Source: Macrostomum lignano
Taxonomy: Eukaryota
Assembly: GCA_002269645.1 (NCBI GenBank)
Contig: NIVC01000181.1
Span: 585,693 to 649,692, forward strand
Reading direction: 5' to 3'
DNA length: 64,000 bases
This document shows, piece after piece, positions 1 to 47,100 of this stretch (position 1 is its first letter; the number at the start of each line of letters is the position of its first letter). The notes beneath the pieces were generated by a model that saw nothing but the letters and a program-made list of their open reading frames with translations, searched no databases and was not told the DNA's origin. The translations under genes were made by a program, and so were the position numbers.

Positions 1-372
1 TTTTCTTTAAACCATATCTCCCTTCTTGGCTTGAGCACATGCCTACAAAAACAAAGAGCACATCGAAAAAAGCTCCTAACGTTTGAAACATTAAAATTAG
101 AAGCGAGTGCCTTTCATGAACAAAATTGAATCGCTGGGATATAATATTTCCGAACAAATCACGGAGAATAAAATTAGGATTGAATGATCGGTGAAGTAAA
201 TGGAGTACATGGCGGTGCGGTGGATATATTTGCACTGAGAAAACCGTAGAGCTGTACTCGTTTCATTGCTCAGGCGTCAACAAGCAAACAAACGCTACAT
301 GATATTCGCTTAAAGCAATGCCTGTCTCTGCTCACGCGAAAGCCTTCAGCTCAAACAACGCCGCTCGACGGA

Positions 373-404
373 CCGGAAACACGTGCCGATCCGATGTTTA
401 TAAA
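373..404 (+). promoter_or_regulatory. Conserved promoter module of the peptide genes (GGAAA-CACGTG E-box and TATA box); representative copy
   Basis: CCGGAAACACGTGCCGATCCGATG followed by TATAAA (399-404) about 90 nt upstream of the ATG. GGAAACACGTGCCGATCCGATG recurs upstream of 15 of 16 intact copies (copy 4 has CACGCG); the TATA reads TATAAA, CATAAA or TATATA. Confidence 0.65.
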
Positions 405-491
405 TTCGTAGTTCCCGACTGCTCAAAGCAACAAGCTCAGACTCGACTCAATCTACACACAGCTCGAAGAATCGACTCGACTCAAGCAATC

Positions 492-674
492 ATGAAGTGG
501 CAACTGGTTCTCGGACTTCTGGTTTTCGCAGCCCTGGTCGTTGTCGAGCCCTCGGAGGCCAAGGCCGAAAGCGAGTCGAAGGAGGATCCGTCCGACTCGG
601 ACGATTCCAAGCTGTCGGAGGAGCAGTTCCCGAAGCTGAGGAAGAAGGGCTTCCACGTTCATTTTCATGGTTAG
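492..674 (+). CDS. His-rich secreted prepropeptide copy 1 (type A, mature GFHVHFH-G)
   Basis: ATG at 492 in GCAATCATG context. 60 aa MKWQLVLGLLVFAALVVVEPS (signal-like), acidic spacer, LRKK, GFHVHFHG stop. Conserved across 16 intact paralogues. Confidence 0.9.
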   Translation: MKWQLVLGLLVFAALVVVEPSEAKAESESKEDPSDSDDSKLSEEQFPKLRKKGFHVHFHG

Positions 675-3125: not shown

Positions 3126-3308
3126 CTAACCATGAAAATGAACGTGGAAGCCCTTCTTTTCCAGCTTGGAGAACTGCTCCTCCGACAGCTTGGAATCGTC
3201 CGAGTCGGACGGATCCTCCTTCGACTCGCTTTCGGCCTTGGCCTCTGAGGGCTCGACAACGACCAGGGCTGCGAAAACCAGAAGTCCGAGAACCAGTTGC
3301 CACTTCAT
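3126..3308 (-). CDS. His-rich secreted prepropeptide copy 2 (type A; FSKLEKK variant)
   Basis: Intact 60 aa ORF, paralogue of copy 1, with conserved promoter module upstream. Confidence 0.9.
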   Translation of the reverse strand: MKWQLVLGLLVFAALVVVEPSEAKAESESKEDPSDSDDSKLSEEQFSKLEKKGFHVHFHG

Positions 3309-7437: not shown

Positions 7438-7620
7438 ATGAAGTGGCAACTGGTTCTCGGACTTCTGGTTTTCGCAGCCCTGGTCGTTGTCGAGCCCTCA
7501 GAGGCCAAAGCCGAAAGTGAGTCGAAGGAGGATCCGTCTGACTCGGACGATTCCAAGATGTCGGAGGAGCAGTTCCCGAAGCTGAGGAAGAAGGGCTTCC
7601 ACGTTCATTTTCATGGTTAG
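7438..7620 (+). CDS. His-rich secreted prepropeptide copy 3 (type A)
   Basis: ATG at 7438 within ORF 7213..7620; intact 60 aa. Confidence 0.9.
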   Translation: MKWQLVLGLLVFAALVVVEPSEAKAESESKEDPSDSDDSKMSEEQFPKLRKKGFHVHFHG

Positions 7621-9265: not shown

Positions 9266-9448
9266 CTAACCATGAAAATGAACGTGGAAGCCCTTCTTCC
9301 TCAGCTTCGGGAACTGCTCCTCCGACAACTTGGAATCGTCCGAGTCGGACGGATCCTCCTTCGACTCGCTTTCGGCCTTGGCCTCTGAGGGCTCGACAAC
9401 GACCAGGGCTGCGAAAACCAGAAGTCCGAGAACCAGTTGCCACTTCAT
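9266..9448 (-). CDS. His-rich secreted prepropeptide copy 4 (type A)
   Basis: Intact 60 aa ORF; protein identical to copies 1 and 8. Confidence 0.9.
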   Translation of the reverse strand: MKWQLVLGLLVFAALVVVEPSEAKAESESKEDPSDSDDSKLSEEQFPKLRKKGFHVHFHG

Positions 9449-12463: not shown

Positions 12464-12655
12464 ATGAAGTGGCAACTGGTTCTCGGACTTCTGCTGTTCG
12501 CATCCCTGGCCGTCGCCGAGCCTTCCCAGGAGGAGAACGACAAGGGCCAAAGTGATTCGAAGGATGATCGGACCGACATGGACGTTTCCGACCTGTCGGA
12601 TGAGCAGTTCCCGAAGCTCAGGAAGAAATTCCACCTTCATTTACCTGGTAAATAA
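12464..12655 (+). CDS. His-rich secreted prepropeptide copy 5 (type B, mature FHLHLP-GK)
   Basis: 63 aa; same signal peptide, longer and more acidic spacer (QEENDKGQSDSKDDRTDMDVSDLSDEQ), then LRKK-FHLHLPGK. Confidence 0.9.
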   Translation: MKWQLVLGLLLFASLAVAEPSQEENDKGQSDSKDDRTDMDVSDLSDEQFPKLRKKFHLHLPGK

Positions 12656-13880: not shown

Positions 13881-14307
13881 GAGTTCTCAGCTGAGTTTCG
13901 AGTGCCTAGAGTTAATTTTTGCACTAGACAATTGGGCAAATGAATTTTGATGCAGAGTCCCGTCAGCCTCAATAAAGAGACTTCGATATACGATTTGTCA
14001 TGAAAGCGACTAAAAAGTATCTGAATGAAGATGCATTTACAAGTCCTTTACTTCACGGCTCGCAACTTGAAGATATATACAAAGCCCAACAAAACAAACA
14101 GTATAGTTTCTTTGCGAGCCTATTTATATGGTACTTGTTGGTATATTTAATAAAACTCGCCAGTGAATGAACACTGAGTACACTACACCTCTACCATTTA
14201 GAAATTGGGGGGGGGGGTTGGAGTCAGAGTTCAGAGTCCGGTCGGCTGGGAGTTTTGAGTGCGAGTCCCTTAATCTTCGATAAAGCGACTTCGATGTACG
14301 ATTTTGT

Positions 14308-14498
14308 TTATTTACCAGGTAAATGAAAGCGGAATTTCTTCTTGAGCTTCGGGAACTACTCATCCGGTTTCCCGGAAGCGTCCATCTCGGAGGATCATTC
14401 TTCGACTCACGTTCACCCTTGTCGTCCTCCTCCTGGGAAGGCTCGGCGACGGTCAGGGCTGCGAACAGCAGAAGTCCGAGGGCGAGCTACCACTTTAT
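14308..14498 (-). pseudogene. Prepropeptide pseudogene copy 6 (type B)
   Basis: Start ATG changed to ATA (14496-14498), Gln4 codon changed to TAG (14487-14489), a frameshift in the spacer and a second TAG before FPK. C-terminus reads FRFHLPGK; the upstream E-box/TATA segment is missing. Confidence 0.85.
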
Positions 14499-15578
14499 GT
14501 TCGCTTGAGTCGAGTCGAGTCAAGCCTGAGCTTGTTGTTTGTCTCTTTATGTTTCATAGCAAAGCCAAATGGCGCTATCGATCGACTGTGGAGAAAAAAA
14601 TGCGCGAAATCGGGATATCTAAAGTACAGACTGTTGCACTATGGCCATTACCATGAATTCTCACTTTCAGACAACCCTCCATTAGAAAAGTTTATTTAGT
14701 CCCTTTGTAGCTTAGCCAGATCCCTCGGAGGTAAGTGAGATGATTTGGTCTACGATATGGTTTGGTATATCCAGATTATGTCCATCTCGCAGCACCTCAA
14801 CAAGTTTACACGCTACAATGAGTTCATGACTGTTTAGCACAAATTTGTTCTATTTCATCCAATGGTGAAAGCCCAGTGGTGTCGCAATGATTTAAAAGTG
14901 ATCTGAAAAAGAAAATTCTGACAGGTTGGTGTCGGAAAACGGTGGCAAGTCGGCTGTTTTCGCTCTGAGCGTTGGTAGATGGAACGAGGCGATGTAAGAA
15001 TATAAGCTGCAAATGGCGCGCTACCACGCATTTCTCGCCCCGTGTCTGGTTCTTCCGCATTTTCTGCCTGGTCGAGTAAGAAATCAAATCTAAGAAATTG
15101 TAAATAGCATCTGACAAGTTGAGATCTTCAATTGGAAACTGCACAAATCGACAACAAGTAGCCGAGTCGATCGATCTGTAGAAATCCCGATTTCGCGAAT
15201 TTCTTCTCTACAGTTGAGAAGAATTACTATGCTATTACTATTACTATTACTATGCTAATGATATGGAGTAAATACAGTGCAGTGTAGAGCGGTGCATAGG
15301 ATACATTCTCACTGAGAACACGCTAAAGCGGTACTCGTTTGATTGCTCAGGTGTCAACGTGCAAATATACGCTTCATAGTATTCGTTCAAAGCAACGCCT
15401 GTCTCAGCTCTCGCGAAAGCCTTCACCTCAAACATCGTCGCTAGACGGACCGGAAACACGTGCCGATCCGATGCGTATAAATTCGAGGCTGCCGACTGCA
15501 CAATACAACAAGCTCAGACTCGACTCAGTCTACGCACAGCTCGAAGAATCAAAGCAACTCGACTCGACTCAAGCAACC

Positions 15579-15761
15579 ATGAAGTGGCAACTGGTTCTCG
15601 GACTTCTGGTTTTCGCAGCTCTGGCCGTCGCCCAGCCCTCGGAGGCCAAGGCTGAAAGTGAGTCGAAGGAGGATCCGTCCGACTCGGACGATTCCAAGAT
15701 GTCGGAGGAGCAGTTCCCGAAGCTGAGGAAGAAGGGCTTCCACGTTCATTTTCATGGTTAG
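15579..15761 (+). CDS. His-rich secreted prepropeptide copy 7 (type A)
   Basis: ATG at 15579 within ORF 15339..15761; intact 60 aa. Confidence 0.9.
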   Translation: MKWQLVLGLLVFAALAVAQPSEAKAESESKEDPSDSDDSKMSEEQFPKLRKKGFHVHFHG

Positions 15762-19404: not shown

Positions 19405-19587
19405 CTAACCATGAAAATGAACGTGGAAGCCCTTCTTCCTCAGCTTCGGGAACTGCTCCTCCGACAGCTTGGAATCGTCCGAGTCGGACGGATCCTCCTT
19501 CGACTCGCTTTCGGCCTTGGCCTCCGAGGGCTCGACAACGACCAGGGCTGCGAAAACCAGAAGTCCGAGAACCAGTTGCCACTTCAT
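19405..19587 (-). CDS. His-rich secreted prepropeptide copy 8 (type A)
   Basis: Intact 60 aa ORF; protein identical to copy 1. Confidence 0.9.
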   Translation of the reverse strand: MKWQLVLGLLVFAALVVVEPSEAKAESESKEDPSDSDDSKLSEEQFPKLRKKGFHVHFHG

Positions 19588-20939
19588 GATTGCTTGAGTC
19601 GAGTCGATTCTTAGAGTTGTGTGTAGATTGAGTCGAGTCTGAGCTTGTTGTGTTGAGCAGTCGGCAGCTGCAAATTTATATGCATCGGATCGGCACGTGT
19701 TTCCGGTCCGTCGAGTGGTGTTGTTTGAGCTGAATGCTTTCGCGTGAGCAGAGATAGGCGTTGCTTTAAGCGAATATCATGTAGCGTTTGTTTGCTTGTT
19801 GACACCCGAACAGTCAAACAAGTACCGCTCAAGCATTTTCTTAGAGCAGGACACTGCAGGTATTCTCGTATTCGTTTCACTAAATATGAATGAGACTTTT
19901 GATGTGGAAAAACTGTCGTACTTCATCTAGGAGAAGAATCCCGGTAGAGACAGTGCATGTAAAAAAAAGAAAGAGAACAATATTCGTAAGATTAAGGAGT
20001 AAAAGCGTTGTATGTTGAGGGGGTTGTTAACTTAAATGTTTCACTCCCCCTCTTCTTATGCATATTCTTCTTTTTGAGTCTTGAAGTTTCTTCTTCTTGA
20101 TTTTTTTAGTTTCTTCTGCCTGTTAGGCTCCATTAATTGGTGAAATAAGACCGTTTGCATCTAATGACCCGATCAGCACAGTGATTAGAACTGTGATGAC
20201 CGGAAACACAATTTTTAGGTAGTTTAGCGATTCCTAGTTTTATTTAATCGGAATGAGGCGAAGCATACTTTTGTGACTATGTACTTTTTTTCTTGAATGG
20301 GTTATAATATTTTTTCTGAACTTGAAGGTCTTTTGCCTGGGATTTTTCAAATCCTAGTGCTTAAGTGGTAGCTTTTTTAAGTGGGCACCTTTGTTGTGTC
20401 ATGATATTACGATATATCACATGGTAAAGATATAAGTTTTAATCAATTTAACAAGTTTTCATACTAGGCAAGTGCCGTATAAGTCCGTCTTTCAGCAACT
20501 CACTCAATTAGTTTACTCAGTACATGTTCGAAACTGTTTAGCACAAATTTGTTCAATCTCATTTAACTGGAAAGCCCAGAAGAGTCGCGATGAGTTTAAA
20601 ATTTTTAGAAAGGGTGAAAAATGCTGTCGAAATAAACACGGCGGTAGCAAGTCGGAAGTTGTCGATTTGCGCGTTGGTAGATTAAACGAGCCGAAGTCAG
20701 AATATAAGCTTGCGAATGGCATGCTTCCACGCATTTCCAGCCTGTGTGTGGATTCTCGTCATTTTATGCTTTGTTCGATCAAACCAAATTGGCTACTGAA
20801 ATCTAAGCAGTTCGAAATCTAACCAGAAAAGTTAGAAACTACTATTAGAAACTGCAGAAATCGACACTCAGTGATCGGAACAACAATCTGTAAATATTCC
20901 CATGTCGTGGAATTTATTCTCCACTGCTGACAAATACAG

Positions 20940-21002
20940 ATGTCGGAGGAGCAGTTCCCGAAGCTGAGGAAGAAGGGCTTCCACGTTCATTTTCATGGTT
21001 AG
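20940..21002 (+). pseudogene. 5'-deleted prepropeptide copy 9 (type A C-terminus only)
   Basis: Only MSEEQFPKLRKKGFHVHFHG plus the normal 3' flank remains, joined directly to the far-upstream flank. Promoter, signal peptide and most of the spacer are absent. Confidence 0.85.
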
Positions 21003-21350
21003 ATGAGCCACATCGCACATCGAAATCGCTTCATCGATCGGAAGATTAAGGCAACTCACAGCTGGCCGGACTTTGAACTTTGACTCGGAACTGCCCAATT
21101 CTAAACGATAAACGTAATATTTGCCCGTATTTGCTGGTTAATTTTAAGAAATATAACAACCAGAACAGTATATTAGCTACCCAATGAAGCTATAATCTTT
21201 GTGTTTTTGAGCTTTGCTAATTTCTTCGAGTTGCGATTCATTCGGAGATTTTTTATACAAATTTACTTACGGATAACGTTTGGTCGCTTTCATGAGATAT
21301 TGTGCATCGAATTCCATTTATCGAAGCTCACTGGACTCTGAAATCTAACA

Positions 21351-21687
<337 letters not shown>

Positions 21688-22600: not shown

Positions 22601-22783
22601 CTAACCATGAAAATGAACGTGGAAGCCCTTCTTCCTCAGCTTCGGGAACTGCTCCTCCGACAGCTTGGAATCGTCCGAGTCGGACGGATCCTCCTTCGAC
22701 TCGCTTTCGGCCTTGGCCTCCGAGGGCTCGACAACGACCAGGGCTGCGAGCACCAGAAGTCCGAGAACCAGTTGCCACTTCAT
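22601..22783 (-). CDS. His-rich secreted prepropeptide copy 10 (type A)
   Basis: ATG at 22783 within ORF 22601..22939; intact 60 aa. Confidence 0.9.
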   Translation of the reverse strand: MKWQLVLGLLVLAALVVVEPSEAKAESESKEDPSDSDDSKLSEEQFPKLRKKGFHVHFHG

Positions 22784-24059: not shown

Positions 24060-26320
24060 GTCTTAGTTTGCGGCTGTGGCCTGCAGAGCAGGCTATGAAA
24101 AGTCGGTTGTCTTAAGTAACTTTTTTGTTTCTTTTAACATCTGATTTTTTCTATACTATAGCGCAACAGGGATACTAAACGAGTTATGAAGTGTGAATAT
24201 ATTTTCTCAACAGTCATTGGAACAGTGAATAAAAGTTCAAAGACATAGTGAAAAATTTACGAAAACAAGTAATACGAACAAGTTTAAAATGATAAGCGAA
24301 TAATTCAACAACGACCAACAAACATCGATAACACCAAGCACGAGTAGCAGTCATAGGCATAACAGCAGGTGAGTCACAATTTAACAAATAGTCATAATTA
24401 ATTTTGATTGGCATGCCAATCTCCGAAGCAGGGCACAGCGCAAAAATCTGGATTTCCCTGGCAGTGATCGCAACAATAGACAGTTTTCTTGACTCGGCCA
24501 CTCTTGTAACACTGTCTGCAACGCTTGGCTGGGTTGAGCCTGGGCACCTGTTGGCCGGAGGCGCTTCAGGAGATGCTGCTGCCTATTGGATCCTGTGCCA
24601 GGCTGTGCTTGAATTTGCCGGTTCCATGCAGGTCCAGTAGTCTGGATGAAGCCCTTGATGGTTAATTCCAGGAACTTCAGGAAGTCGTACGAGCCGCCAC
24701 GAGACTGGTACACAACCCAACCGTTTCTGACAAGGACCAAGAAAAAGTGGGCCCCTAGCTTGGCAAACCACTTTTGGGTCCTTCTGTTTGGGCTATACGG
24801 CTGTAGGCCAGAGTCCAGCTTATCAACACCGCCCATGAAGCTATTGTACGATGTTGCTGTTAGAGGCTTGAGCTCTACAACTTCATGATTTCCTTGAACA
24901 GTGCGGTGAACATGTTGAATGGCGGCGGCATTTTTGGTGTCAATAAAATACACCGTCTTTGTACCAGATGCCTTTCTGACGACGTACTTCACAGCAAGTA
25001 CACTGCCGCTTCGCATGAAGGCACAGCCTGGAGCGGGCACGGCCAGATCTCTCAGTTCAACGGGGACACCGCGGTTTGCACGCGCTGTGCAAGTCAGCAT
25101 GTCGTGATGCAGCAGGTAGACTGCTAGGCGATGCGATCCGAACCAGCTGTCGCAAACGACATGGTAGCCAAGGTCCAGTACATATCGGCATGTCTCAACC
25201 AGCACCTTCTCGCTCATCGAAAGTCCTTCACATCCCAGATCTTGACCAAACTTATCATTCTCGGGTCTGCTCGAATGCACAAGAAAGTTGCAAACATAAC
25301 CTGTTTTTGCCTCACACAAGCAATAAATATTAATGTCATACCACGCTTTCTTAGCTGGAATATATTGGCGGAACAGTACTCTTCCTCTGAGCAGCACCAG
25401 TTCTTCGTCTACGCTTAGCTCCTTCTCTGGCATGTACACGTTCCGGCAGATCCGCGACACACAGTTGATGAAGGGCCTGGCCTTAGCCAGAGGATCAGCG
25501 GCGTCAAAGTTGGAGCAGTCATAGAAGCGTAGTAGACTGCTGATCTGCTGAAACCTGTCTCTTGGCAGACATGCTTGCTGCTGGAAGAATGGCGGAGAAT
25601 AGAACTCGCTTTTAGACCAATAGTGGGTCACTTCGGGTTTTTTACTACTCCCATATAGAGTGACATTGCGACGAACTTTGACATCTCATTTACAGTGACA
25701 TCCTTCCAGCTGGAAAATCGCGATGGTACATGTAGCTGTTCATCCTGAAAATCTTCGAACTCGCGCAAACGCTCGAGCATTCGTCCAGTCGCACAGCTTC
25801 TGTAGCAATTCGGGTGTCAGAAACCTTCGGCTGAAAGCTACTGGATCTTCGTCAGCGTTCTCGGGTTGCGGCAAATCCGGATTGACACCTGGAATGCCAA
25901 GAAACTCGGGGTCCTGGTTCGGCTTCTGACCTTGGCCAGGGTGGCATGCATGCCATACATTGGTTGCACCATGGGCAGTGGCCAAACCTTCATCTACCTC
26001 TTGCATTTCCATGCCTCCTTGTTCGGTTTCGTCCTCATCATCAGTGGAGAAACTGTCGTCTCCTTCTTCAAACTCGGGATCAGTATCAGTATCAAAATGC
26101 TCCGCTTGAGCCATAATGACGATAAATAGTTTTTAAAAAATTGAAAAGGACGTTAATCGAAACTGCTCTAGCTTAAAAACTGAGCCACAAGCTGTACAAA
26201 TAAAATCCTAAAGTTTCAAAGACTAAATACTCAGTAGGAGCTGCTACCTCAAACTAAAGACATGTCAGCCAAAGATTAAAAAATGTTTATGGCCTGCAGG
26301 GCAGGCCAAGCCGCAAACTG
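24060..26320 (-). mobile_element. piggyBac-family DNA transposon, frameshifted
   Basis: Contains the transposase below. Imperfect inverted repeats GTTTGCGGCT..TGGCCTGC...CAGGC at about 24065-24095 and 26285-26318; exact TTAA termini not resolved. Confidence 0.8.
24401..26114 (-). pseudogene. piggyBac (PGBD4-like, DDE_Tnp_1_7) transposase with frameshifts
   Basis: Acidic N-terminus (25740..26114), WKDVTVNEM segment, catalytic motifs SVDE / CDSWF / MGGVD in ORF 24381..25631. The C-terminal Cys-rich domain (KRCRQCYKSGRVKKTVYCCDHCQGNPDFCAVPCFGDWH) is in another frame; at least three frameshifts (about 25760, 25640, 24545). Confidence 0.88.
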
Positions 26321-26906: not shown

Positions 26907-27089
26907 ATGAAGTGGCAACTGGTTCTCGGACTTCTGCTATTCGCAGCCCTGGCCGTCGCCCAGCCCTCGGAGGCCAAGGCCGAAAGTGAGTCGAAGGAGG
27001 ATCCGTCCGACTCGGACGATTCCAAGCTGTCGGAGGAGCAGTTCCCGAAGCTGAGGAAGAAGGGCTTCCACGTTCATTTTCATGGTTAG
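26907..27089 (+). CDS. His-rich secreted prepropeptide copy 11 (type A)
   Basis: Intact 60 aa ORF; protein identical to copy 12. Confidence 0.9.
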   Translation: MKWQLVLGLLLFAALAVAQPSEAKAESESKEDPSDSDDSKLSEEQFPKLRKKGFHVHFHG

Positions 27090-27594
27090 ATGAGCCACAT
27101 CGCACATCGAAGTCGCTTCATCGAAGATTAAGACAACTCAGCTGACCGGACTTTGAACTCTGACTTAGAATCGCCCAATTCTAAATGATAGACGTGAAAT
27201 CTACTCAGTCTTTATTCACTGATCAGTTTTACCAAATATAACAACCAACACCATCTAATAAGGCACCCAATGCTACTATAACGTTTGCGTTTTTGAGCTT
27301 TGTAAATTTCTTCCAAGTCGCAGGTCGTCATGTGGAGAACCTCTCGGTGCAGCTACTTGTACCAGGTACGAGTAGATAAGGGTTTTTAAAAGGAAATTCA
27401 TCGAAGATTTATTGCAATCGTTACTCTCTGAGTAAGGGGTGTTAGACAGGCCGGAGGGTGCCGCTGTACATATCGCTGTACTTTGGCAGGGGTTGAGGTG
27501 TGGGGGTGTTGGCCGCGCCGGCCAGCTTAAAGCCTCTGCACCCGGCCCGGCTTGGCTCCGCCGCAATTTCTCAATTTTTTGCTCAGCCACCGCC

Positions 27595-28711
27595 ATGAGT
27601 GCCAGCCCAAAGCGACTCTAAACGTGCGCCAACTCAAGGCTGAGCTGCGAAACAGAGGCCTGCCTACTACGGGCTGCATACAACAGCTTGCCAAGAGCTT
27701 GTCTACTGCACTCGGTTTAGAGCAAGCTGACGAAGACTTCAACAACTCCGAGATGACTTCTGCTCCGGACGCCGAAGATGGCATCAGCAGCGCGGGCGAG
27801 GCGCCTCCGGGGGCGGGGAGCAACCGGCTGGCTGCGCTGCGACAGGAGGTGGAGCTGCTCGAACTGCAAGTCTTGGAAGGCCGTCGTCGTGATCTTCAGC
27901 AACAGCTTCACACTCAGCAGCGCTTGACGGCTCAGCCCCAGCCAGCATCATCATCAGGTGAGCCAAACGCACATGCAGTCTGCAGTTGCCCGAGGTTTTT
28001 GAATCTGGGATGAGGGAGGCGGCTCAGCTTCAGGACGCTAATTGCCAGGCTCCGACTCGCAAGTTGCATCTCGTCAGAGACCACATCAAGCTAGCCAGAG
28101 GACCCGGCTCAGCCAGTCAGGAGCAGTTGGTCGCCACTATGGAGAATGGCTCGCTCACATTCAGGAAGCAGGAGCCGAAGCTGTCTAGTATCTCAATTGG
28201 TCAGTGGATCGCGGCCAACTCGATCATCTTGCAAAAGCTGATCAAGGAAAAACTTCCGGCGGCTGCTGGAAGCACTGATGGTCTCCTGACTGACGTCCTT
28301 GGCTACCTTGACTACAATCGCAAGATTGGAGAGCTGCTGGCTGCTGACTACCCGGAATCCGTAATCTGGGAGTTTGACGAGGACTACTGGAGGCTGGTGG
28401 CGGAGTCGGGCATGGCGTGGGGTGAGGAGCCCCCTCAGTTGTACCACAAGCACCTCAACGCCCCCAGAAACCTGCGGTTCACGTTCGCTAAGCAGCCCAG
28501 CCAGCAGCAAATCCCGGCAGCAACCAGGGCGATCTGTCTGCGCTTTAACTCCGAGTCCGGGTGCACCCACCAGAACTGCAGGTTCCGCCACGTCTGCAAA
28601 ATCCAAGGCTGCCTGGCAGCGCACCCGGCTCACGCTCACACGCAGTCGCCGCAGTCATTACTCACCGGACAGCTGCTGGGTCACGTGACCGGTGCAAGTG
28701 CAAAAAACTAA
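27595..28711 (+). pseudogene. Gag-like ORF1 with N-terminal SAP-like motif and C-terminal Cys/His finger
   Basis: LNVRQLKAELRNRGLPTTG..QLAKSL (SAP-like) and ICLRFNSESGCTHQNCRFRHVCKIQGCLAAHPAHAH. The Kozak-like ATG at 27595 is out of frame with the SAP motif; second frameshift near 28000. Confidence 0.7.
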
Positions 28712-30565
28712 TGCCATTTTATCCAGCTGACTGCTCTGCTTTTAATTCCGATTTTTCTGCTTTTACTTTTTCGCTGCCCATCTCGTCTGACCTGCAACCT
28801 GACGCCTGGAGTGCTCTGCTCAGCGACGACCCAGACCGCGACTTTCTGATGCAAGGCGTCGTCAACGGTTTCGCTCTCACCAATGCTGTCCAGCCACCTT
28901 TGACTTCGTCCAAGAACCACGCCTCCGCCCTGCTGCACCGCTCTGCTGTGGAAGCCCAGGTCGAGGAGGAGCTGAGCCTTGGGAGGTACATCCGGTGGAG
29001 CGGCCCGATCAAAGTCAACCCCATCGGTGCCCTTCCCAAGTCCGACGGGCGGGTCCGCCTGATCCATGACCTGTCCTATCCGACCGGCCAGTCTGTCAAC
29101 GACTTCTACGACCAACAGAAGCACATCAAGTACTGCACTGTCCAGCAGCTGGTTCGTCATCTCCGTCCGGGACACTACATGGCCAAAATTGATTTCAAAA
29201 GCGCCTACAGGTCCGTGCCAATCAGGCCTGCTGACTACCGGCTCGTCGGCTTCGCCTGGCGGTTTGACTCAGACAGCCAGGACAGTCTGCTCTGCGACAC
29301 CAGGCTTCCCTTCGGCGCCAAAGCTGCTTACGAAGTTTTCCACCGTCTTTCAGCCGCCGTTACCCGGCACATGCACCGGCTTGGCTTTTCTGCCACGGTG
29401 AACTACCTGGATGACTGGGCAGTCGCTGGGAAATCCGAGTCCGAGGCTTTCGCTGCTTTCAATTGCCTGCTGGACATCTTGCAGCGCCTCGGCTTTGTCA
29501 TCAACTGGGACAAGGTTGTCAGACCTACGCAATGCATCGACTTCCTTGGCGTGCGCATCAACACCGCTACCGGCACCAAGTCGCCGCCTGAGGAGAAAGC
29601 TCTCGAGACGACAAAGCTGCTGACTCAAACCTGCTCGGAGACTCGGGTGCACATGCGCTCTGCTCAGAAGCTGATTGGCAAGCTTGGCTGGTTCTGTCAG
29701 ATTGTCCCTCATATCAGAGTCTTCCTGCGTCCGCTCTTCGACTGGCTGACAACTGCTGTTGACTGCAAGCTTCAGGTGACCGATGAGACCCGCACCAACC
29801 TGTCCTGGTCGCTCAGAGCCCTGGCTTGGCTCCCCCCGGTGTCTTTGTGGCCGCGCTTTGATGGAGTTTGCCATGGAGACTGACAGCAGCCGGTCGGGCG
29901 CAGCCGCAGTCATCTGGGGTGCCGAGAGTTTCTGGAGTGTCATCGACTGGGAGCTGGACTGCGGTGGTGTGTTCAAGGATGTTCATATCAACTTCAAGGT
30001 GGCTCTGGCACCTTTGCTGATTATCCTGCACCGTCGCTCTCAGCTAAAGAACTGCAAGATTGTCATCTACACCGACAGCACCGCTGCGGCTGGCATGATC
30101 AATCGGCTGAGCTGTCGTGACCCGCGGTTCCTGCAGGTGTACCAGACTGTGGCTCTGCTGTGCATCAGGAACAGCATCAGTTTTGAGGCCTTTCGCCTTC
30201 CTGGTCGCATGCAGATTTTTGCTGATGCCGCCTCCCGCATGTTTGTCTCGCAGTCTGAGCTCATTAACTTTTGCTGCCGCTACTGCCGTACGCTCGTGAT
30301 CTGCCCGCTTGAGTTCGCGTCGCACGCGCTCTCTGCCGCTTCCCAATCTCGCCTCCTTTTGCAGGTCGCCCTCACCCTCCGGAGACGCCGCCCGCCCCCC
30401 GCACTGTGTCCGCCGGACACCTGTGCCGCCTCGGCCTGGCGGAGAACTCCTGGCGATCCTACCTCAGCCAGTTGCGCTCCTGGGAAGCCTTCTGTGTTAG
30501 CGCAGGCCGCCCTTCATCTCCAGCTGACGGTGACCTGCTTTGCCGCTACATCGCGCACCTGGTGA
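28711..30565 (+). pseudogene. Reverse transcriptase and RNase H of the YR retrotransposon
   Basis: RLIHDLS, KIDFKSAYR, RLPFG and YLDD motifs in ORF 28561..29883; RNase H motifs TDSS, HINF, YTDSTAA in ORF 29783..30565 after a frameshift near 29870. Confidence 0.88.
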
Positions 30566-31330
30566 GCACCCGGCTCCGGTCCTTCTCTAGCCTCCGATCC
30601 TACATCCATGCCGTCTCTTTTCTGCACCAAGCCACCGGCGCCCCCGACCCAGCGAAAGACTTTACCGTGCAGCTGGCCCTCCGCGGCGCCAAACGTCATC
30701 TGGGCCTGCGATGCAAACAGGCAAAGCCGCTGACCATCGAGCACCTCAAGAGCATCTATCAGCAGCTCCCGCGCTCCATCTCAAGCGCAGATCTCAGGGC
30801 CGCCTTCTGGGCGGCTCTTCTGGTGGGCTGGTGGGGCATGTTGCGTCTTGGCGACTTCCTATCGACCCGCGGCAGCCGCTCTGTCTCGCGGTCTCGCGGG
30901 CCTGCCTGTCGGCTTCATCTGGCTGCTGGAAGTTGGCCCTCCCTAAGTCCAAGACCAACCAGTTCGGGTCGACGCCGCATGTCGTTCTTCTGCCAGCTGT
31001 TTAAGAGTCACCACTCTGCCCTGTGCGCGCCCTGCGGTCTCAACTGCACCTGTCACCAGCCAGCGACCCAAGGCGCCACTCTTTGGCTACGGCCTCGGAG
31101 GCGAGCTCTCAGCCAGCCAGCTCATCAGCTGTCTTCGTGCGTGTCTGGCTGCGTGCGGCCTCCCAGCTGCTGGTTTCTCCGGCCACAGCATCCGGCGTGG
31201 GGGTGCCAGCTTCTGTCATCAAATCGGCTTGCCAGATTCGGACGTTCGGGCTCTTGGGGGCTGGAGATCGGACGCTGTTCTCCGCTACTTTTCTTCCAGC
31301 TCTGCCCTGTCGCGCCGCCAGCGCTCTGCT
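30406..31330 (+). pseudogene. Tyrosine recombinase (YR) with N-terminal SAM-like domain, frameshifted
   Basis: SWRSYLSQLRSWEAFC..., GMLRLGDFL (catalytic R), KSKTNQFG, then GHSIRRGGAS and GWRSDAVLRY in shifted frames. Confidence 0.85.
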
Positions 31331-32548
31331 TCTCTCATGGCTTCGCAGCTGCAGGCTGCGTCCACCTGACTGCCTTCCCGCTTTTACTCCTTCCCTTCCC
31401 CATCATTGGGGTTGGGATCCGCTTTCTCGGCCGCTGCCTGCTTTTCGCAACTGATTTGTCTCGCTTGGCTCCTTCCGGCGTGTTTAATGATGCGATAAAC
31501 TACTCAGCACTTTTGCGGTGCTCAATAAGTTTTTCGAATTTTAATATATCGCATAAGCCCACAACATAATCGGCAATTGTAAAATTACGAGTACGAGCAT
31601 TAACCGGCAGCTCCTCTCTTCGCCATTCATTTTTGACTTATTTGGGTGATTCGCGCGCTCTACCCTCTACTCAAGTTTGATGGCATATTTGAGTGCGTGC
31701 TTTGCCATATGTCGATGGATAAAACCCAGAATTGCTTATTTTCCTTAATTCAGGTTTCATATCAGTTCTAGCCGCTGTCCTGATCGGGTCAGTGGATGCT
31801 GCATACGATTTTTGTTCCAGAAATTACTGAAGCGCTGCCCCATTACCGGCAAATGAAACCTAAAAACTAAAATAGGAAGCTAATGAATAAAAACGGTGTC
31901 CATGCATTGATCATTTGGCACATCTCAAAGGCCATCGAGGAAAAGTACACCTCAGTGGAATGCCTTCCATGAATGGAGAATGATATTAACATAAATTGAG
32001 CTACACTTTCCTTGCACCAAGTCTGCCTTTCATTTGACACCACAATAAATAGAAAAGTTCACGATTGCCGTGATGACCATAGTATTAGAAGTCTCTGTCT
32101 CCCAGCAGGATCGGCAAACAATGAACGATTAGATTGACAAGGATGGCAAAAATTAGCAGGAACTTCGTGTCAGTCTGAAGAAATTAAATCGTCAAATGCG
32201 TCCAACCTGGGCGTGTTCAAGCTGTTCAAGAGACCAGGACGCAGCAAGCGGTGATTGACTGTCTCGTCATTCCTTTGAGCGAATATCATGTACAAAATCC
32301 CGGTAGAGACAGTGAAAAGAAAGAAAGAAGAATCTATCAATTCCATCTATTCATCTATTTGATTTGAGTTGGTAAGAGTTTTCAACAGCAAAATCAGCTT
32401 TACAGTCTGAATAGATTTAACAGTGAAAACTACAAGTAAGGAGATGTAGTAAAGATAATACAATAAAAATAATCATAGAGGCTGTGAAAAGAATAGATAG
32501 AACCAAACGGTCACAAAAATTAAGATTAATTCCCCCACCAGCAGAGAC

Positions 32549-34786: not shown

Positions 34787-34969
34787 ATGAAGTGGCAACT
34801 GGTTCTCGGACTTCTGCTATTCGCAGCCCTGGCCGTCGCCCAGCCCTCGGAGGCCAAGGCCGAAAGTGAGTCGAAGGAGGATCCGTCCGACTCGGACGAT
34901 TCCAAGCTGTCGGAGGAGCAGTTCCCGAAGCTGAGGAAGAAGGGCTTCCACGTTCATTTTCATGGTTAG
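34787..34969 (+). CDS. His-rich secreted prepropeptide copy 12 (type A)
   Basis: Intact 60 aa ORF. Confidence 0.9.
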   Translation: MKWQLVLGLLLFAALAVAQPSEAKAESESKEDPSDSDDSKLSEEQFPKLRKKGFHVHFHG

Positions 34970-36199: not shown

Positions 36200-36382
36200 T
36201 TATTTACCAGGTAAATGAAGATGGAATTTTTTCCTCAGCTTTGGGAACTGCTCCTCTGACATCTTGGAATCGTCGGAGTCGGACGGATCCTCCTTCGACT
36301 CGCTTTCGGCCTTGGCCTCTGAGGGCTCGACAACGACCAGGGCTGCGAGCACCAGAAGTCCGAGAACCAGTTGCCACTTCAT
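36200..36382 (-). CDS. His-rich secreted prepropeptide copy 13 (type A spacer, type B mature peptide)
   Basis: Intact 60 aa ORF: EAKAESESKEDPSDSDDSK spacer followed by LRKK-FHLHLPGK. Confidence 0.9.
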   Translation of the reverse strand: MKWQLVLGLLVLAALVVVEPSEAKAESESKEDPSDSDDSKMSEEQFPKLRKKFHLHLPGK

Positions 36383-36758: not shown

Positions 36759-37002
36759 TGTCTCAAATTGTCTCCCCGCTGTCTCAAACTGTCTCTCCGC
36801 AGTCTCAAACTGTCTCTCCGCAGTCACAAACTGTCTCTCCGCAGTCTCAAACTGTCTCTCCGCAGTCACAAACTGTCTCTCCGCAGTCTCAAACTGTCTC
36901 TCCGCTGTCTCAAACTGTCTCTCCGCAGTCACAAACTGTCTCTCCGCAGTCTCAAACTGTCTCTCCGCTGTCACAAACTGTCTCTCATCAGTCTCAAACT
37001 GC
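36759..37002. repeat. 21-bp minisatellite (about 11 units)
   Basis: Unit (A/T)GTC(T/A)CAAACTGTCTCTCCGC. Confidence 0.95.
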
Positions 37003-37209: not shown

Positions 37210-37915
<706 letters not shown>

Positions 37916-38197
37916 ATGATCTATTTACCTATCTATATTAGAGATTTAATCACGGAAATTTTCACATGTTGAAGGCAAGTTAATCAAGCTGTTCGTACTG
38001 GTCCGGGAGCATCAGTCCCTGTGGCTGCTGCACATGTATCTCCAAGCGGCCAGAGCCAGCAGACTGGCCAACAAGGCACCTCTAAGAACGTCCAGGTAAT
38101 GGGAAATGTAGGTTAATAATTTAAGCCTGTAGCGGGCGAGGCGACAAGGCAGGTCGGTTTCGGTCTTTGACAGCTTTTCACACCTGCGTGGGAAGGG

Positions 38198-41100
38198 TCA
38201 GGTGAGGTAAAGCATCATCCATGCTTTCGTTAATATCGATAGAAGTATAAAAGTAGAAACACACCAAGTCCTTTCGGCCGCTGTAAGACACAGTACACAG
38301 ACAGGACACAGGTTGCAAAAGTACACAGACAGGACACAGGTTGCAAAAGTACACAGACAGGACACAGGTTGCAAAAGTACACAGACAGGACACAGGTTGC
38401 AAAAGTACACAGACAGGACACAGGTTGCAAAAGTACACAGACAGGACACAGGTCGCAAAAGTACACAGACCACAGCTCGCCCTACAGAAGCCCCATCCCA
38501 TGCAAGTGCTCACAGCCTGTACAGTCGAAACGCGGCTCTCGCCCGTGGTCCCATCAACAGCCAGCTGGGATCGCCCTCGCCGTCGCCCTCGAAGGCGTCG
38601 CCAGTCAGCTGGTTCGCCGTGCTCGGCGACAGACGGCCAGCCTCGGCCAGGACGGCCAAGTTGAAGGCCGCCTCCGGGTCGCCCTTGGCAACCGCGCGAG
38701 TGTAAAAATCCACGGCGGCGCTCAGGTTGGAGGCGTGCGCCAAGCCCAGGCTGTGGTAGTCTCCCATGCGCGTCAGCGCTGAGGAAAGAATGGTTATGCC
38801 CCGCTTAGACTACTCTCGGGTTTTGTTCAGTAGTGTGACTGGCGCTGGTAGCCCAGCTATTGTTAATTTACTTGCATGCATCCAACCTATCAACTCCGCA
38901 TTTCATCCGATTCACAAATCTCCCTCTCTGTTCTCATCTCCTAGTATCTCATATCTATCACTGATCTCACCTGTACCTTTATCTCATTTCCCTCATTTTC
39001 CTTTCCTCATTGACTCTGTTCTATCGCGGTCCTCATGCATCTCACTGGTTATACTGATCCCAACTCATCCATTTGCATTCTCATTTCAAGAACTATCCCA
39101 AACCGTCCAAAATTGAACTAAGAAACTCACACTTGGCGTGTACTTGGTTCTCGTCCCTCCAGACGCTCCTGTTGTAGTGATGAAACTCGCACTCCTTGGC
39201 GAACCTGCCGTTCAGCCGGTTGCTATGCTGGTCGCACAGGTAGGCCAAGTTGAAGTTGGCTACCTCCAATCCGCAGTATGCAGCTAAGGTGTACCACAGG
39301 GCTGAGGTCTCGCTGAAGTTGTTTAAAATCATTATAGCCAGTCTGTAGTCGCCCTCTTTACCTAAGCTCGTAGCTAAATGTAATTTTTTTGACACTCACA
39401 TTTGCTCCTTGCGATAGGCCACAATGGCTTTGGTCAGCAGTGCCCCTACTTTGGGGTTGAGCTCCGCCACGTAACGGGACCATCTGCGGGGTATTCGGGT
39501 ACATTTAGTTGGGTAGATCGGAGGTACAAAGCAAAGATAGATAGAGGTTTGAGGAAAAGGATAGATAGAAGTGTGGTGCAGGGAGGAGAGGGAGGGAGAG
39601 GAAGAGGGGTAGAAGGAGGAGTAAAGGGAAGAGGGGAAGAGGGAATAGGGGTAGAGGGAATAGGGGTAGAGGGAAGAGGGGTGGTTTTAAAGTTTATCAA
39701 GTTTTTCACATGGATGCTTCAAGTATCACTAGTAGCAGTGTGTAGTAGTAGCAGACTACTCAAGAAGTCCTTAAGATACATTTGGGTACTGCTGCGATTC
39801 AAGGGGACGGTCGAGTAACAGTCGGCAGATAGGCATGCTGCTAAGCCCCCTCCGCTGACTGCTAGGATACGTCCGCACGCACACGCAGGCAGGCACTCGC
39901 ACTTGCGGTATAAAAAGCTTCACTCACTCGGTCGCCTGTCCTAAGTCCCTTGGCAGGCCGATGTCCGGCATGTGGCGCCGCCTGTACTTTGCCACCATGA
40001 TCGCCGCGTGCAGCAGCCCGCGCCCGGCGGCCTCCGTGAAGTGCCGGAACGCTTCGCGTCGATCCTTTGGCAGTCCATGCTGCGGGAATCCGATGTCGCG
40101 AAGTACGCCGAGGTTGTACACGGCGTCGTGGCCGCCCAGAGCGGCGGCTCGCTTGTAGAGATCGATGGCCTTGGCCATGTCACCCTCGTGCCTCTCGGCG
40201 TACCAGCCTAAAGAGGTAAGGGTCCGCGGGTCGCGCTCGTTGGTGAGCTGGGCCGCCCTCTGCAGATACTGGAGGCCCTCGCGCACTCGGTGGCTTCCGT
40301 GACCGCCCTTGATGAGCAGCATGCCGTAGTCATGCGCGGCACCCGCGCTGCCGTCTTCGTCAGCCGCTTTTCTGTTTTTTCGATTGAGACAAACCAGGAG
40401 GAATTGTGCGGTATTCCTTAGCCAGGAATGATATCCCTAACTGCTAAACCTTACAGCATATAGGCTGCTTGCAAAGTGTGTTAGGGGCGGCGGGGAGCCG
40501 TCGGCGTTGGGGGCTGTCGCGTCGCGCTAGCGTTTAAACCCCCAAATTCTGCTCTACCAGCGCTGTCGCTCACCTGCTCAATGTTTTTGTTATATTCTCG
40601 TATTTCTTGTATTTGTCGTAACTTCTAACCTCCTAATGCCAAATATAAAATCCGTCGTACAAGGTGTGCCCACCTGTTTGTTCGTTGCCTGCCAACTCTC
40701 GCCGTGACCTCTCGTTGGCTGAAGAGGCCGTAGACATGAATAAATAATCTTAAATTACGAGTACGCTCGTATGCTGGTTCAGTTGAGCTAGTTATACTAT
40801 CCTTTCATTCATAGCTTTAACACTCCGCAGCCAATCAGAACTCATATGCATGTAGCTATAAAAGCATCCCGCTTTCCTTTTGACTTCCAAAGGACTTTCA
40901 AAGACGTCTGGACAGGAAATCACTCTCAAGGGCGCACAGCGACCTAGGCGTTCAATTTATCGGTCATGTTAACTTTCTGTTATTCATCACTACCCCACAG
41001 CTTAACCACTCACTGGTAGACACATATTGTATCAAAACAAAACAATATTACTATATAATCAGCTACGAATCGATGACTTCTTCTCCTCACTTCTCGGCAT

Positions 41101-44100: not shown

Positions 44101-47100
44101 AATTTTGTCGATTTGAACAATACATACAATACAATGGTGTGAACGAGCCGTTAGTGAGAGTCGTGAGGTGAAGCTGGAGAGTCAGAGTAACTGGAAGAGT
44201 GAGCTTCCATTCGACGCAGGAGACATATGAGGGAGTTACCTTCTAAACGGAAGAGGTAAAACATTTATAAAAGCATCAGCATAGAGCTGCTCACACTCCT
44301 CTGCCGCCATTGCTATCCCAGTGTTGGAGCAGCTCAGGCTCGTTAATCGGCTGCAGGTGAGTCAGCACGCCGATGTCTCCATGGACTGCCAACGGAAATT
44401 CGTTGAACTGCACTCGCTCTGTTGGATTGTTGGATTATTGAGGGTAAATTTTAGGCAAGGTACTTTTGTATTGGAAGGTAAACTAAAAATGACTAGAAAA
44501 ACTTGTTAGATAAAAAACAAGAAATTACAGTTTCTTCCTTATCTGTCGCTGGTGCAACTGCATGTCAACATCTCAAGTTTCCAGTGAGGAGGCAAGTAGT
44601 TAAGGCAGGCCATTCTGATTACCTTTAAGTACATCGATGCGTACGCAGGCACACCACAGAATATACAGGCATAAATTTCAGCCGGGAATTCAGTGGCTTT
44701 AACATTCTTATTTTCAAGCATCTCAGTACACTCTGTGCCTTGAATGTCTGAGCCCACGCAAACCAAAGTACATGTGCCTTCGCGCGAGATTCAAATGTGT
44801 TGCTGTTGACGCCATTTTACTCAACCTGCAAGCGGGCGATCAAAGTCAATTGTTCGCTAATCCAACTAGCACACATTTTCGTGGTTGCATATATTATGGC
44901 CTGACTTTTCTCAGTGTACACAGTTAGTGCCTTTAACGCTCGTTCATACAGCGATCAAATAACGCCAATTTGGTGTCATCACACAGCCGGTACATATTTT
45001 TATTCCTTTTCAAATGGTTCGCGTGATTTGATGGTCAATTAGATGGCTGTGTGGACGTATCCACGAGTGATCTTAAATATATTCACAAAAGTGACAAATG
45101 AATATTATTTATTAATCAACGGAATTATATATGGGGTCAATATGCCCACCAAAATTTGGCATATTCCCCGCAACAATATTTTCGCTTTAGCGATTCATTC
45201 TAAATCTGATCAAAAAATCTAATAGAGACAGTCAATTTTTAACCACAAGTCATCAATAACGTGCACATTTACCAACAACGATGAAGAATAGGGTATAAAA
45301 GAAGCTTTTCATTATAGTCACCTCTTAAATTTAGCAAGCAGTGTGTGTGTGTGTCTGTGCTTGGAGCATAAAAAGCTTGAAGTGTGCAGAGTTTACTTTT
45401 ACTCGTATCACTAGATAATTGAGTAGTCAGATTTCAGAGTCCGGCCAGCTTCGATAAAGCTACTTCGATGTACGATGTGTAATGAAAGCGAAAAATCATT
45501 ATGTGCAAGTAGATGTATCCATAAGTGTTCCACGAGGACTTGACACTTGAAGAAATTACAAAGCTCAACGAAATTAATAATTTAGTTGTTTTGTGGGCCC
45601 AATTAGATGGTCCTGGTTGTTATATTTGTTAAAACTGATCAGCGAATAAGTGCTGTGTAGATTTTACGTTCATATTTAAGAATCGGGCGGTTGCGAGTAG
45701 AGTTCCGAGTCAGGTCAGCTGTGAGTTGTCTTAATCTTCCGATCCATGAAGCCAATTGTACGATGTAAGATGTGGCTCATCTAACCATGAAAATGAACGT
45801 GGAAGCCCTTCTTTTCCAGCTTGGAGAACTGCTCCTCCGACAGCTTGGAATCGTCTGGGTCGGACGGATCCTCCTTCGACTCACTCTCGGCCTTGGCCTC
45901 CTCCTGGGTGGGCTGGGCGACGGCCAGGGCGGCGCACAGCAGAAGTCCGAGAACCAGTTGCCACTTCATGATTGCTTGAGTCGAGTCGATTCTTCGAGCT
46001 GTGTGTAGATTGAGTCGAGTCTGAGCTTGTTGTGTTGAGCAGTCGGCAGCCTCGAATTTATACGCATCGGATCGGCACGTGTTTCCGGTCCGTTGAGAGA
46101 CGTTGTTTGAGATGAAGGCTTTTGCGTGAGCAGGGACAGGCGTTGCTTTAAAAGAATTTTATGTAGTGTATATTTGTTTTATAACAACTGAGCAAAAAAA
46201 GTATCACTCTAGTGTTTTCTCAGTTCATCTTACGTATCGCAGTACTCTGCAGTGTACTGCACTGCATTTGACTCTTTATCTGTTGCATAGTAAAGCCGAA
46301 TGACACTATCTATCGCCTGCGCAGAATAAATTCAGAATGTCTACAGATTTTTGTCTCGGCTACTTTGTGTCGCTTTTTGCAGTTTCCGATGGTAGCTCTT
46401 AACTTGTCAAAGGTAGTTTTCTGGGTGAGGGCAATATATCCGCCGTACAACTGCAGAGGTCTCATGCTCCACTGTATTTTGCTGGTGAACTAAAATAATG
46501 CCGAGAGTGTTGGGCTCAACCTCAAAGTTTTAAACCTCTTTCATGGATTGAGCTCTGCGGATAAAGCTCTGGATCAAGTAAATGTCTGGGCGTGCAGGGT
46601 GACGGCCCTGCCTCCAATGGCAGTGGCGTCGTCACCGTAACCAACCGAAAATGAAGACAGGGCCTGGCCAGGGATCACTCGGAAGGCACTCATGACCAGG
46701 ATTCAGAGCGTCGGCGTGAAAGCTCAGCCTTTGGATCCTCCCTTTCAGAATCTGGTGGAAGGGATTTGCACGCAAAGTTAAGCAGTGACCGTAGGGATGG
46801 AAATCATGTTCATAATGCACCGTGGAGAGTAGCATGAGCTTTGTGATTTTAAAGGGCCACCTGACACACCTTGATGATTACATTATCAAAAGCACCTTCA
46901 AGGTTGAGGGAAAGACTGAAGGCATAACTGTCGCCCAGCCACGCCCGTTCTACTATTGCATGTAAAGCGAAATAAAGATATGACAGATGCTTCGTGAAGA
47001 AGAACTGGGTAGGTACCATCAGCTCCAAGAGAGTTGAAGGGCTTGAGGGTTCCAACCGCACAGGTGATAGAGTCTTTTGTAACGATGCCTGCCACCAAAG

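Follow-up and report, generated by a model that had tools for sequence, protein, structure and literature searches.

A tandemly amplified family of candidate host-defence peptides with an arginine-to-histidine series in the flatworm Macrostomum lignano

Results

A cluster of histidine-only peptide genes

A 64,000-nucleotide stretch of the genome of the flatworm Macrostomum lignano (contig NIVC01000181.1, positions 585,693 to 649,692 of the forward strand; here called the window) was found to carry 16 intact paralogous genes for small peptide precursors. They are part of a hitherto uncharacterised flatworm family of peptides that has been amplified in tandem and whose members form a natural series from arginine- to histidine-containing ones. 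The gene at the centre of this study lies at 492-674, and its last codons (648-674) encode the predicted mature peptide GFHVHFH. Judging from the sequences, the chances are somewhat better than even that the window represents the all-histidine sub-cluster of a lineage-restricted family of secreted, amidated peptides of the host-defence type, amplified in tandem. A preliminary description, made from the letters of the window, had centred on metal binding: it proposed that cleavage of the precursor frees an amino-terminal Cu(II)- and Ni(II)-binding (ATCUN) motif, X-X-His, and that the acidic propiece serves as a safety catch on a metal-activated peptide.

Positions 648-674 read GGC TTC CAC GTT CAT TTT CAT GGT TAG (G-F-H-V-H-F-H-G-stop) in the frame of the ATG at 492, and they directly follow the codons AGG AAG AAG (R-K-K). 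The proposed position of GFHVHFHG immediately after Lys-Lys, with His as its third residue, was thus confirmed. These codons end an intronless open reading frame (ORF) of 60 amino acids (492-674, + strand; MKWQLVLGLLVFAALVVVEPSEAKAESESKEDPSDSDDSKLSEEQFPKLRKKGFHVHFHG), which was found by ORF search and protein match and agrees at 100% identity with the ORF part of the M. lignano model BOX15_Mlig012700g1 (P0001), a hypothetical protein. Public gene models extend the ORF upstream, and the exact 60-residue sequence is unmatched in public assemblies. The precursor starts with a putative signal peptide (MKWQLVLGLLVFAALVVV; 492-545, + strand), judged by inspection from an N-terminal Lys followed by a hydrophobic run of 16 residues, and signal peptidase is predicted to cut somewhere between residues 18 and 23. 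Behind it come an acidic propiece rich in Ser, Asp and Glu (EPSEAKAESESKEDPSDSDDSKLSEEQFPKLR; 546-641, + strand; net charge −4 to −6 including the basic site), the Lys-Lys pair as the predicted proprotein-convertase site (642-647, + strand), the predicted mature peptide with His at positions 3, 5 and 7 (648-668, + strand), and a Gly codon, the probable amide donor, followed by TAG (669-674, + strand).

Among the 16 intact genes, 12 end in KK/GFHVHFHG (type A) and four in RKK/FHLHLPGK (type B); in all four of the latter, His occupies position 2 after Lys-Lys, as had been described. Type A genes close with GGT TAG and type B genes with GGT AAA TAA, which places a Gly for C-terminal amidation in both. 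The precursors are 60-63 amino acids long in the window and 62-90 in the relatives described below.

The coding sequences are conserved

All 12 type A copies of the window are identical in nucleotide sequence over the peptide codons. The diversity among these units rose from 0 at 642-668 and 0.01 near the start codon to 0.03-0.09 within the propiece and 0.15-0.5 in the untranslated regions (UTRs) and flanks. In the type B peptide codons, two synonymous sites vary while the amino acids do not. In addition, two homeologous contigs (L001 and L002) contain versions of this cluster that are 92-97% identical to it and add 11 intact genes, again of types A and B, which fits the known redundancy of the polyploid M. 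lignano assembly (PMC5730564). When 11 syntenic pairs between the window and these contigs were compared, the coding sequences (CDS) had diverged by 3.4% and the non-coding sequences by 5.9% (Fisher p=1.4e-6). Of the codon changes, 39 were synonymous and 22 nonsynonymous, and the 297 nt of peptide-coding sequence had none; the pairs are mutually non-independent, and gene conversion is at work among the copies. This pattern indicates that the CDS are under purifying selection. Given the number of copies, the conservation of the CDS and the presence of a decayed pseudogene for contrast (14075-14521, − strand), which illustrates an unconstrained copy, the focal feature is no chance ORF. Furthermore, the M. 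lignano annotation was built purely from genome-guided RNA-seq transcripts (PMC5730564), and therefore the family loci are transcribed.

In type A, the peptide codons within the stretch 642-686 showed no variation even at synonymous sites, both among the 12 window copies and in the 11 homeologous pairs, whereas the remainder of the CDS holds the 39 synonymous codon changes. Gene conversion or a nucleotide-level element near the stop codon could explain this invariance of the peptide codons. An antisense ORF of 118 amino acids (453-809, − strand) over the focal gene was rejected as a gene, as its openness follows from the GC3-rich sense codons. It is open in 14 of the 16 copies and closed where Leu is encoded by TTA.

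Arginine-type relatives share the precursor and the register

A hidden Markov model of the window proteins was searched against 1.84 billion representatives, followed by a profile search, which yielded about 26 clusters. All but one came from M. lignano, the exception being L006, a divergent relative encoded by a short contig of genomic DNA in run SRR31628392. The focal ORF itself matched only M. lignano sequences in 5.8 billion proteins. Every member combines a near-invariant signal peptide (MKWQL.LGLLL...), an acidic propiece and an invariant Lys-Lys. Across 38 CDS of 21 peptide types the Lys-Lys did not vary, while the residue before it may be R, E, K, A or Q. The end of the precursor is likewise stable, with G or GK before the stop codon in 20 of the 21 types, and paralogs that share only 41-66% identity still retain both Lys-Lys and the terminal Gly.

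From the invariance of Lys-Lys against its varying neighbours, cleavage is predicted to take place after the second Lys. The alternative start K-F-H for type B, suggested earlier for a cut after R-K, found no support: the relatives with AKK or QKK and the three type A copies with EKK can be cut only after Lys-Lys. A cut before FPKLRKK, which the preliminary description had named as a possible different N-terminus, is unlikely because the family does not conserve this stretch and no basic site lies upstream of it.

Besides GFHVHFH and FHLHLP, the short mature ends predicted in the family are IFRVHVRF, FVRVHVRF, IFRVRVHI, IFRVRVRI, FVRLRVRI, IFRVRARIHI, WLRVRARVRI, FVRVRVRL, FVRVRARIRL, FIRARVRVRL and FIHIHF (P0018). 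Other ends are FRIRIRWGRVARNVLRLL, WLLRRIRIRWRRVLRVASRVYRIYRYLPI, WRIKSACKIFRRLLHLARKCYAKK and FLRVRLPRVRMPRVRLPRVRLPRLRVRFRWS, and the Arg-rich ends also include WLLRRIRIRW... and FLRVRLPRVRMPRVR.... The mature parts measure 6-10 residues, or 18-31 in some Arg-rich relatives. The majority register after Lys-Lys is hydrophobic, hydrophobic, basic, hydrophobic, basic, hydrophobic, basic, and basic residues are found at positions 3, 5, 7 (and 9) in 16 of the 21 types. In the 34 distinct CDS, His and Arg are the only residues at positions 3 and 5, and those at 2, 4 and 6 are F, L, I, V or A throughout.

The contig of the window, NIVC01000181.1 (797 kb), carries at least 25 family genes. Nine of them, of the Arg type or encoding FIHIHF, are found at 438-476 kb, about 110 kb from the window. 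His-type and Arg-type genes (L003, L004) have a conserved block upstream of the start codon in common, which is partly kept in the divergent relative L006. In front of the focal gene this putative core promoter spans 371-405 (+ strand) and consists of GACCGGAAACACGTGCC, about 11 nt and TATAAAT. It contains an ETS-like CCGGAAA, a CACGTG E-box and a TATA box (399-405) about 90 nt 5′ of the focal ATG, and its diversity among the copies is low (0.03-0.04). The shared block suggests a common regulation of His-type and Arg-type genes.

A Pfam scan of the family proteins gave no match clearly above threshold; the marginal, short ones included a Lock_Gag1-like score of 27.1 against a cutoff of 27.0 (P0015) and Defensin_propep at E=0.12. 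The precursor P0015 carries a duplicated propiece segment, and a PF22991 flag on it was not accepted, the borderline match being confined to this duplicated stretch. At about 441 kb of NIVC01000181.1 (17002-17220, − strand, of L003) we observed a family member with an extended tail, ...KKWLRVRARVRVGSRRRSRSG-stop, in which an internal Gly followed by RRR could yield WLRVRARVRV-NH2 and a second fragment. String searches of the literature with the window peptides and with the peptides of six relatives returned nothing relevant. The gene identifiers Mlig012700, 010443, 014625 and 031410 were absent from the texts and supplements of the searchable M. lignano papers, which therefore provided no site of expression.

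The ATCUN motif follows from the register

Peptides of the form H2N-X-X-His have sub-picomolar conditional affinities for Cu(II) and Ni(II), and Cu(II) is bound by GHK-type X-His termini as well. Since an ATCUN site requires a free alpha-amine, it exists by definition only after cleavage, and in this sense the claim that processing would unmask the site is supported. His is present at position 3 in type A (G-F-H) and in P0018 (F-I-H), and absent from it in type B (F-H-L), where it stands at position 2. In an ATCUN sequence residue 2 must not be Pro, which keeps two backbone amides open to deprotonation for a square-planar 4N site; this residue is Phe in type A and Ile in FIHIHF.

In the 34 distinct CDS, position 3 is His in 27 and Arg in 7, the latter in FVRVRVRL, IFRVRVRI, FVRVHVRF, WLRVRARVRI and others. 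In the alignment, each residue of the type A peptide G-F-H-V-H-F-H has its counterpart in I-F-R-V-H-V-R-F and I-F-R-V-R-V-H-I. At positions 3, 5 and 7, His and Arg replace each other, and where CGT encodes the Arg this takes a single CGT/CAT change. Relative to type A, type B has lost the first codon (a 3-nt deletion of GGC), so that its His residues come to lie at positions 2 and 4 and the register is lost. His3 of type A therefore sits in the generic basic slot of the family, and members that change from Arg to His, as type A and FIHIHF, gain an X-X-His start automatically.

What stands of the ATCUN proposal is that G-F-H after Lys-Lys fits the sequence definition: the motif is present in the predicted type A product and is chemically plausible, since by established coordination chemistry a peptide of this kind would bind Cu(II) or Ni(II). 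Conservation is where it fails, as position 3 is Arg in most relatives, and the sequences do not support ATCUN as a conserved or demonstrably selected feature of the family.

The propiece follows the charge of the peptide

The net charge of the propiece ranges from −2 to −10 across the family, and from −4 to −6 in the His types, which have 2-3 His in the peptide. Among the 15 Arg-containing types, which are related sequences, propiece charge and the number of Lys and Arg residues in the peptide were correlated with a Spearman coefficient of −0.85. The His types fit this trend only when His is counted as positive, as expected in an acidic secretory compartment. That the propiece is an ancestral trait of the whole Arg-rich family, with a charge that follows the Lys and Arg content of the peptide, argues for a general charge-neutralising or trafficking propiece and speaks against the metal-specific safety catch proposed earlier. 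By analogy, the charge balance corresponds to the classic design of precursors of antimicrobial peptides (AMPs), and it is older than the His types.

Organisation of the cluster

The genes of the window lie on both strands, neighbours are often oppositely oriented, and transposon remains and microsatellites separate the copies. Apart from the focal gene, ORF comparison placed the type A paralogs at 3126-3308 (−; variant site FSKLEKK/GFHVHFHG), 7438-7620 (+), 9266-9448 (−), 15579-15761 (+), 19405-19587 (−), 22601-22783 (−), 26907-27089 (+), 34787-34969 (+), 45781-45969 (−; EKK site, 62 amino acids), 49451-49639 (−; KKK site, 62 amino acids) and 56604-56792 (−; EKK site, 62 amino acids). Two type B genes were located in the same way at 12464-12655 (+), with its own propiece variant, and at 58246-58434 (+; P0005). 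The other two type B genes proved to be mosaics when the copies were compared: the gene at 36200-36382 (−) joins an A-like upstream region and prepro part to a type B peptide, and the gene at 54528-54710 (+) has B-like flanks, an A-like propiece and a type B peptide. These two mosaic genes suggest that recombination or gene conversion shuffles prepro and peptide modules among the paralogs.

The window contains in addition one pseudogene and one 3′ fragment of the family. The pseudogene, recognised by alignment to the copies, has no start codon, a premature stop and a frameshift. Its relic end KKKFRFHLPGK (F-R-F-H-L-P) is an Arg/His intermediate of type B. The fragment at 20938-21223 (+) is a 5′-truncated type A copy (...MSEEQFPKLRKKGFHVHFHG-stop and 3′ UTR) that adjoins an (AGAT)n array.

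Between the peptide genes we found an ORF for a piggyBac-like transposase (24381-25631, − strand; Pfam DDE_Tnp_1_7, E=3.5e-39) and a run of retroelement ORFs with broken frames (27552-31569, + strand), including a SAP-domain ORF (27552-28013) and a reverse transcriptase (RVT_1; 28561-29883). Repeats at 21350-21686, 37210-37936, 36760-37001 and 38292-38470 comprise the long microsatellites (AGAT)84 and, complementary to it, (ATCT)182, as well as arrays of a 21-nt unit (11.5 copies) and a 28-nt unit (6.4 copies). At 59664-63972 (− strand) there are several long ORFs (171-307 amino acids) with no Pfam match, possibly a degraded mobile element or an unannotated gene.

Discussion

Processing and a possible role in defence

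From the precursor sequences we infer processing, amidation and a site of secretion, and beyond these an antimicrobial role and switching by pH or metal. Signal peptidase would take off the signal peptide, a PC2-type convertase would cut after Lys-Lys, a carboxypeptidase would trim the Lys of type B, and the Gly would be converted into a C-terminal amide. M. lignano has a PC2 homolog with an RNA interference (RNAi) phenotype (PMC4490696), which makes PC2-type processing after Lys-Lys plausible. Until cleavage, the acidic propiece may neutralise or escort the peptide. The products would be amphipathic beta-strand peptides with alternating hydrophobic and basic residues, of the cationic antimicrobial or cytolytic kind. 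GFHVHFH-NH2 and FHLHLP-NH2 would be nearly uncharged at the pH of seawater and polycationic below about pH 6, and they could bind Cu(II) or Ni(II) at the N-terminus (through ATCUN in type A and His2 in type B) and Zn or Cu through H-x-H. The ATCUN motif would then be a chemical by-product of the switch from Arg to His in a fixed 3/5/7 register and not the conserved purpose of the gene.

The earlier comparison with antimicrobial peptides is supported by the Arg-type relatives, which resemble cationic AMPs: their peptides carry +2 to +12 from Lys and Arg in the alternating pattern, and the long members reach +8 to +12. The peptides of the window have no Lys or Arg and would be cationic only when His is protonated. 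The beta-strand hydrophobic moments are near the maximum for short peptides, although individually non-significant against shuffles, the sequences being very short. A helminth AMP-prediction pipeline had already scored BOX15_Mlig024774g1/g2 (...AEKWRRRRRFRWRKAIRIAGKVAKAVL) as AMP-like by 100% of its tools and BOX15_Mlig001477g4 by 82%, and had dropped them only as 'Same genome' or 'Ungrouped' (Irvine et al. 2023; PMC10414684 S5 File). All of these proteins carry the signal peptide and propiece of the family, and the in-silico scores of these longer relatives independently support a role in defence.

Several points weigh against this interpretation. For every member, the case for defence consists of sequences and gene models. 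The peptides of the window have no Arg or Lys and, with only 6-7 residues, are to our knowledge below the length of almost all natural AMPs that act on membranes. Among convertase sites, Lys-Lys is less common than Lys-Arg. The invariance of the type A peptide codons may be due to gene conversion and not to selection on the peptide. Furthermore, a tree-free minimal-change count by region revealed no excess of nonsynonymous changes in the mature part over the prepro part (Fisher p=0.84); diversifying selection of the immune-effector type is thus not demonstrated, and we make no claim of positive selection. Finally, one short amidated peptide per precursor would also be in keeping with a signalling peptide.

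Comparison with known peptides

Known host-defence peptides with an ATCUN start are piscidin 1 and 3 (FFH and FIH), histatin 5 (DSH) and hepcidin (DTH). The flatworm peptides share with them a predicted His3 start (GFH, and FIH in FIHIHF), further His residues downstream and a site that proteolysis would expose. However, piscidin, histatin and hepcidin have 20-25 or more residues with a separate membrane-active or receptor-binding body, whereas the flatworm peptide has 6-7 in all; the motif is not conserved in the flatworm family, and there is no sequence homology. A replacement of Arg or Lys by His is also seen in the histatins and in the clavanins of the tunicate Styela clava, and the clavanins are amidated as well. 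By this likeness, the increase in positive charge expected below about pH 6 points to a possible switch by pH or metal. Unlike the 6-7-residue flatworm peptides with their strand-type alternation, clavanins are helices of 23 residues, and they show no homology to the family.

In the layout of the precursor, the family is reminiscent of the prepro-AMPs of the frog-skin dermaseptin superfamily and of the defensin type, with a conserved signal peptide, an acidic propiece, a dibasic site and a hypervariable C-terminal peptide. Gly or Gly-Lys for amidation, clustered genes and the charge balance between propiece and peptide recall these precursors as well. These, on the other hand, are not homologous to the flatworm family, use KR and not KK, and release much longer products in another kind of host. 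Short beta-sheet AMPs with alternating hydrophobic and cationic residues are known from designed octamers of the (IRIK)2-NH2 type and from the VRVR stretch of lugworm arenicin. FVRVRVRL-NH2, IFRVRVRI-NH2 and WLRVRARVRI-NH2 would share this (hydrophobic-Arg)n-amide pattern, and the peptides of the window would be their His analogues. The octamers are synthetic, however, and arenicin is a 21-residue disulfide hairpin released from a BRICHOS precursor.

Alternative explanations

It could be argued that type A encodes a copper-activated peptide, in which the cut after Lys-Lys unmasks the ATCUN site, bound Cu(II) or Ni(II) causes oxidative damage, as has been proposed for piscidins, and the propiece acts as a safety catch. 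The G-F-H that follows the invariant Lys-Lys with no Pro at residue 2, the His3 in the same register of a second His-only type (FIHIHF), the textbook Cu(II) chemistry of X-X-His and X-His termini, and the fact that the His-only genes are the most amplified and most strictly conserved ones are all in line with this idea. We nevertheless regard it as unlikely. With Arg at position 3 of most relatives and His and Arg exchanging at 3, 5 and 7, His3 appears to derive from the register and not from selection for ATCUN; type B is equally conserved and yet starts with His2, its K-F-H alternative being unsupported; and the propiece is older than the His types, with a charge that follows the Arg content. 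Moreover, Cu(II)-ATCUN complexes are rather redox-inert, and reactive oxygen chemistry is not a given. A broader variant would make natural, gene-encoded minimal metallopeptides of GFHVHFH-NH2, FHLHLP-NH2 and FIHIHF-NH2, with Cu or Ni taken up at the N-terminus upon secretion and an H-x-H-based beta-sheet assembly with Zn or Cu that has redox or hydrolytic activity; this we consider improbable, and assembly and catalysis by these natural peptides are pure conjecture by analogy. The model for it are the designed catalytic-amyloid heptapeptides Ac-LHLHLRL-NH2 and Ac-IHIHIQI-NH2, reportedly made by Rufo and co-workers in 2014, which likewise have alternating hydrophobic and His residues and a C-terminal amide at a size close to the 6-7 residues found here (FHLHLP resembling LHLHL.., and FIHIHF resembling IHIHI..). 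Those peptides are synthetic and N-acetylated, whereas the free N-terminus expected here would draw Cu towards the ATCUN site or His2. If the idea were true, the flatworm would possess a biological counterpart of the catalytic amyloids and a pH- or metal-gated defence or surface chemistry.

Signalling peptides, such as neuropeptides, hormones or pheromones that act on receptors, would offer a different reason for the amplification, namely dosage or diversification. The products are predicted to be short and amidated, and the precursors have what Collins et al. 2010 used to recognise planarian prohormones: a signal sequence, one or more basic cleavage sites next to the peptide and fewer than 200 amino acids (PMC2953531). 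The planarian 'Planarin' prohormones (spp-6/7/8/9/17) have likewise expanded as neighbouring, oppositely oriented duplicates (PMC2953531), and the ...VR[IL]-amide ends predicted for the Arg-type paralogs recall flatworm I/L-amides such as GFVRIamide (PMC4723143), whose prohormones resemble the family in the same general features. Neuropeptide families usually keep a C-terminal motif, though, while here both the length (6 to 31) and the C-terminal residue (H, P, F, I, L or S) vary; the long members, at +8 to +12, are highly cationic and score as AMP-like; the copy number, with at least 25 genes on one contig, is far higher than in the Planarin and I/L-amide cases; and profile and Pfam searches found no homology to known prohormones. 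On balance a signalling role seems rather unlikely.

We judge it very improbable that the genes encode some other secreted product, be it a reproductive (prostate or seminal fluid) peptide, a toxin directed at prey or predators, or a metal-handling or self-assembling material. Tandem amplification, lineage restriction and fast divergence would be as in reproductive and venom families, and heptapeptides with alternating hydrophobic and His residues assemble with Zn or Cu in design work, but no evidence is specific to any of these roles. Almost no credence can be given to the view that the ORFs are transcribed but unprocessed or functionless, as recent selfish or neutral duplicates with a tail of no role. 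The copies are indeed very recent and similar, and the gene conversion seen in the mosaic genes could mimic conservation. Yet synonymous changes outnumber nonsynonymous ones, the CDS are more conserved than the flanks, Lys-Lys and the terminal Gly have been kept over the distance between the diverged paralogs, and true pseudogenes are visibly decayed.

Significance

The AMP repertoire of flatworms has been stated to be not described (Irvine et al. 2023, PMC10414684). If the defence-type reading of the family is correct, its products may rank among the shortest gene-encoded defence-type peptides known. Should the peptides prove to be signals, they would constitute an unusually amplified new flatworm peptide family. 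The all-Arg, mixed and all-His paralogs, set on a fixed scaffold of 6-10 residues, provide a natural test of what charge, pH gating and N-terminal Cu/Ni sites (ATCUN against His2) contribute to peptide activity. As the host flatworm has working transgenesis and RNAi, the family may offer a testable entry into flatworm innate immunity.

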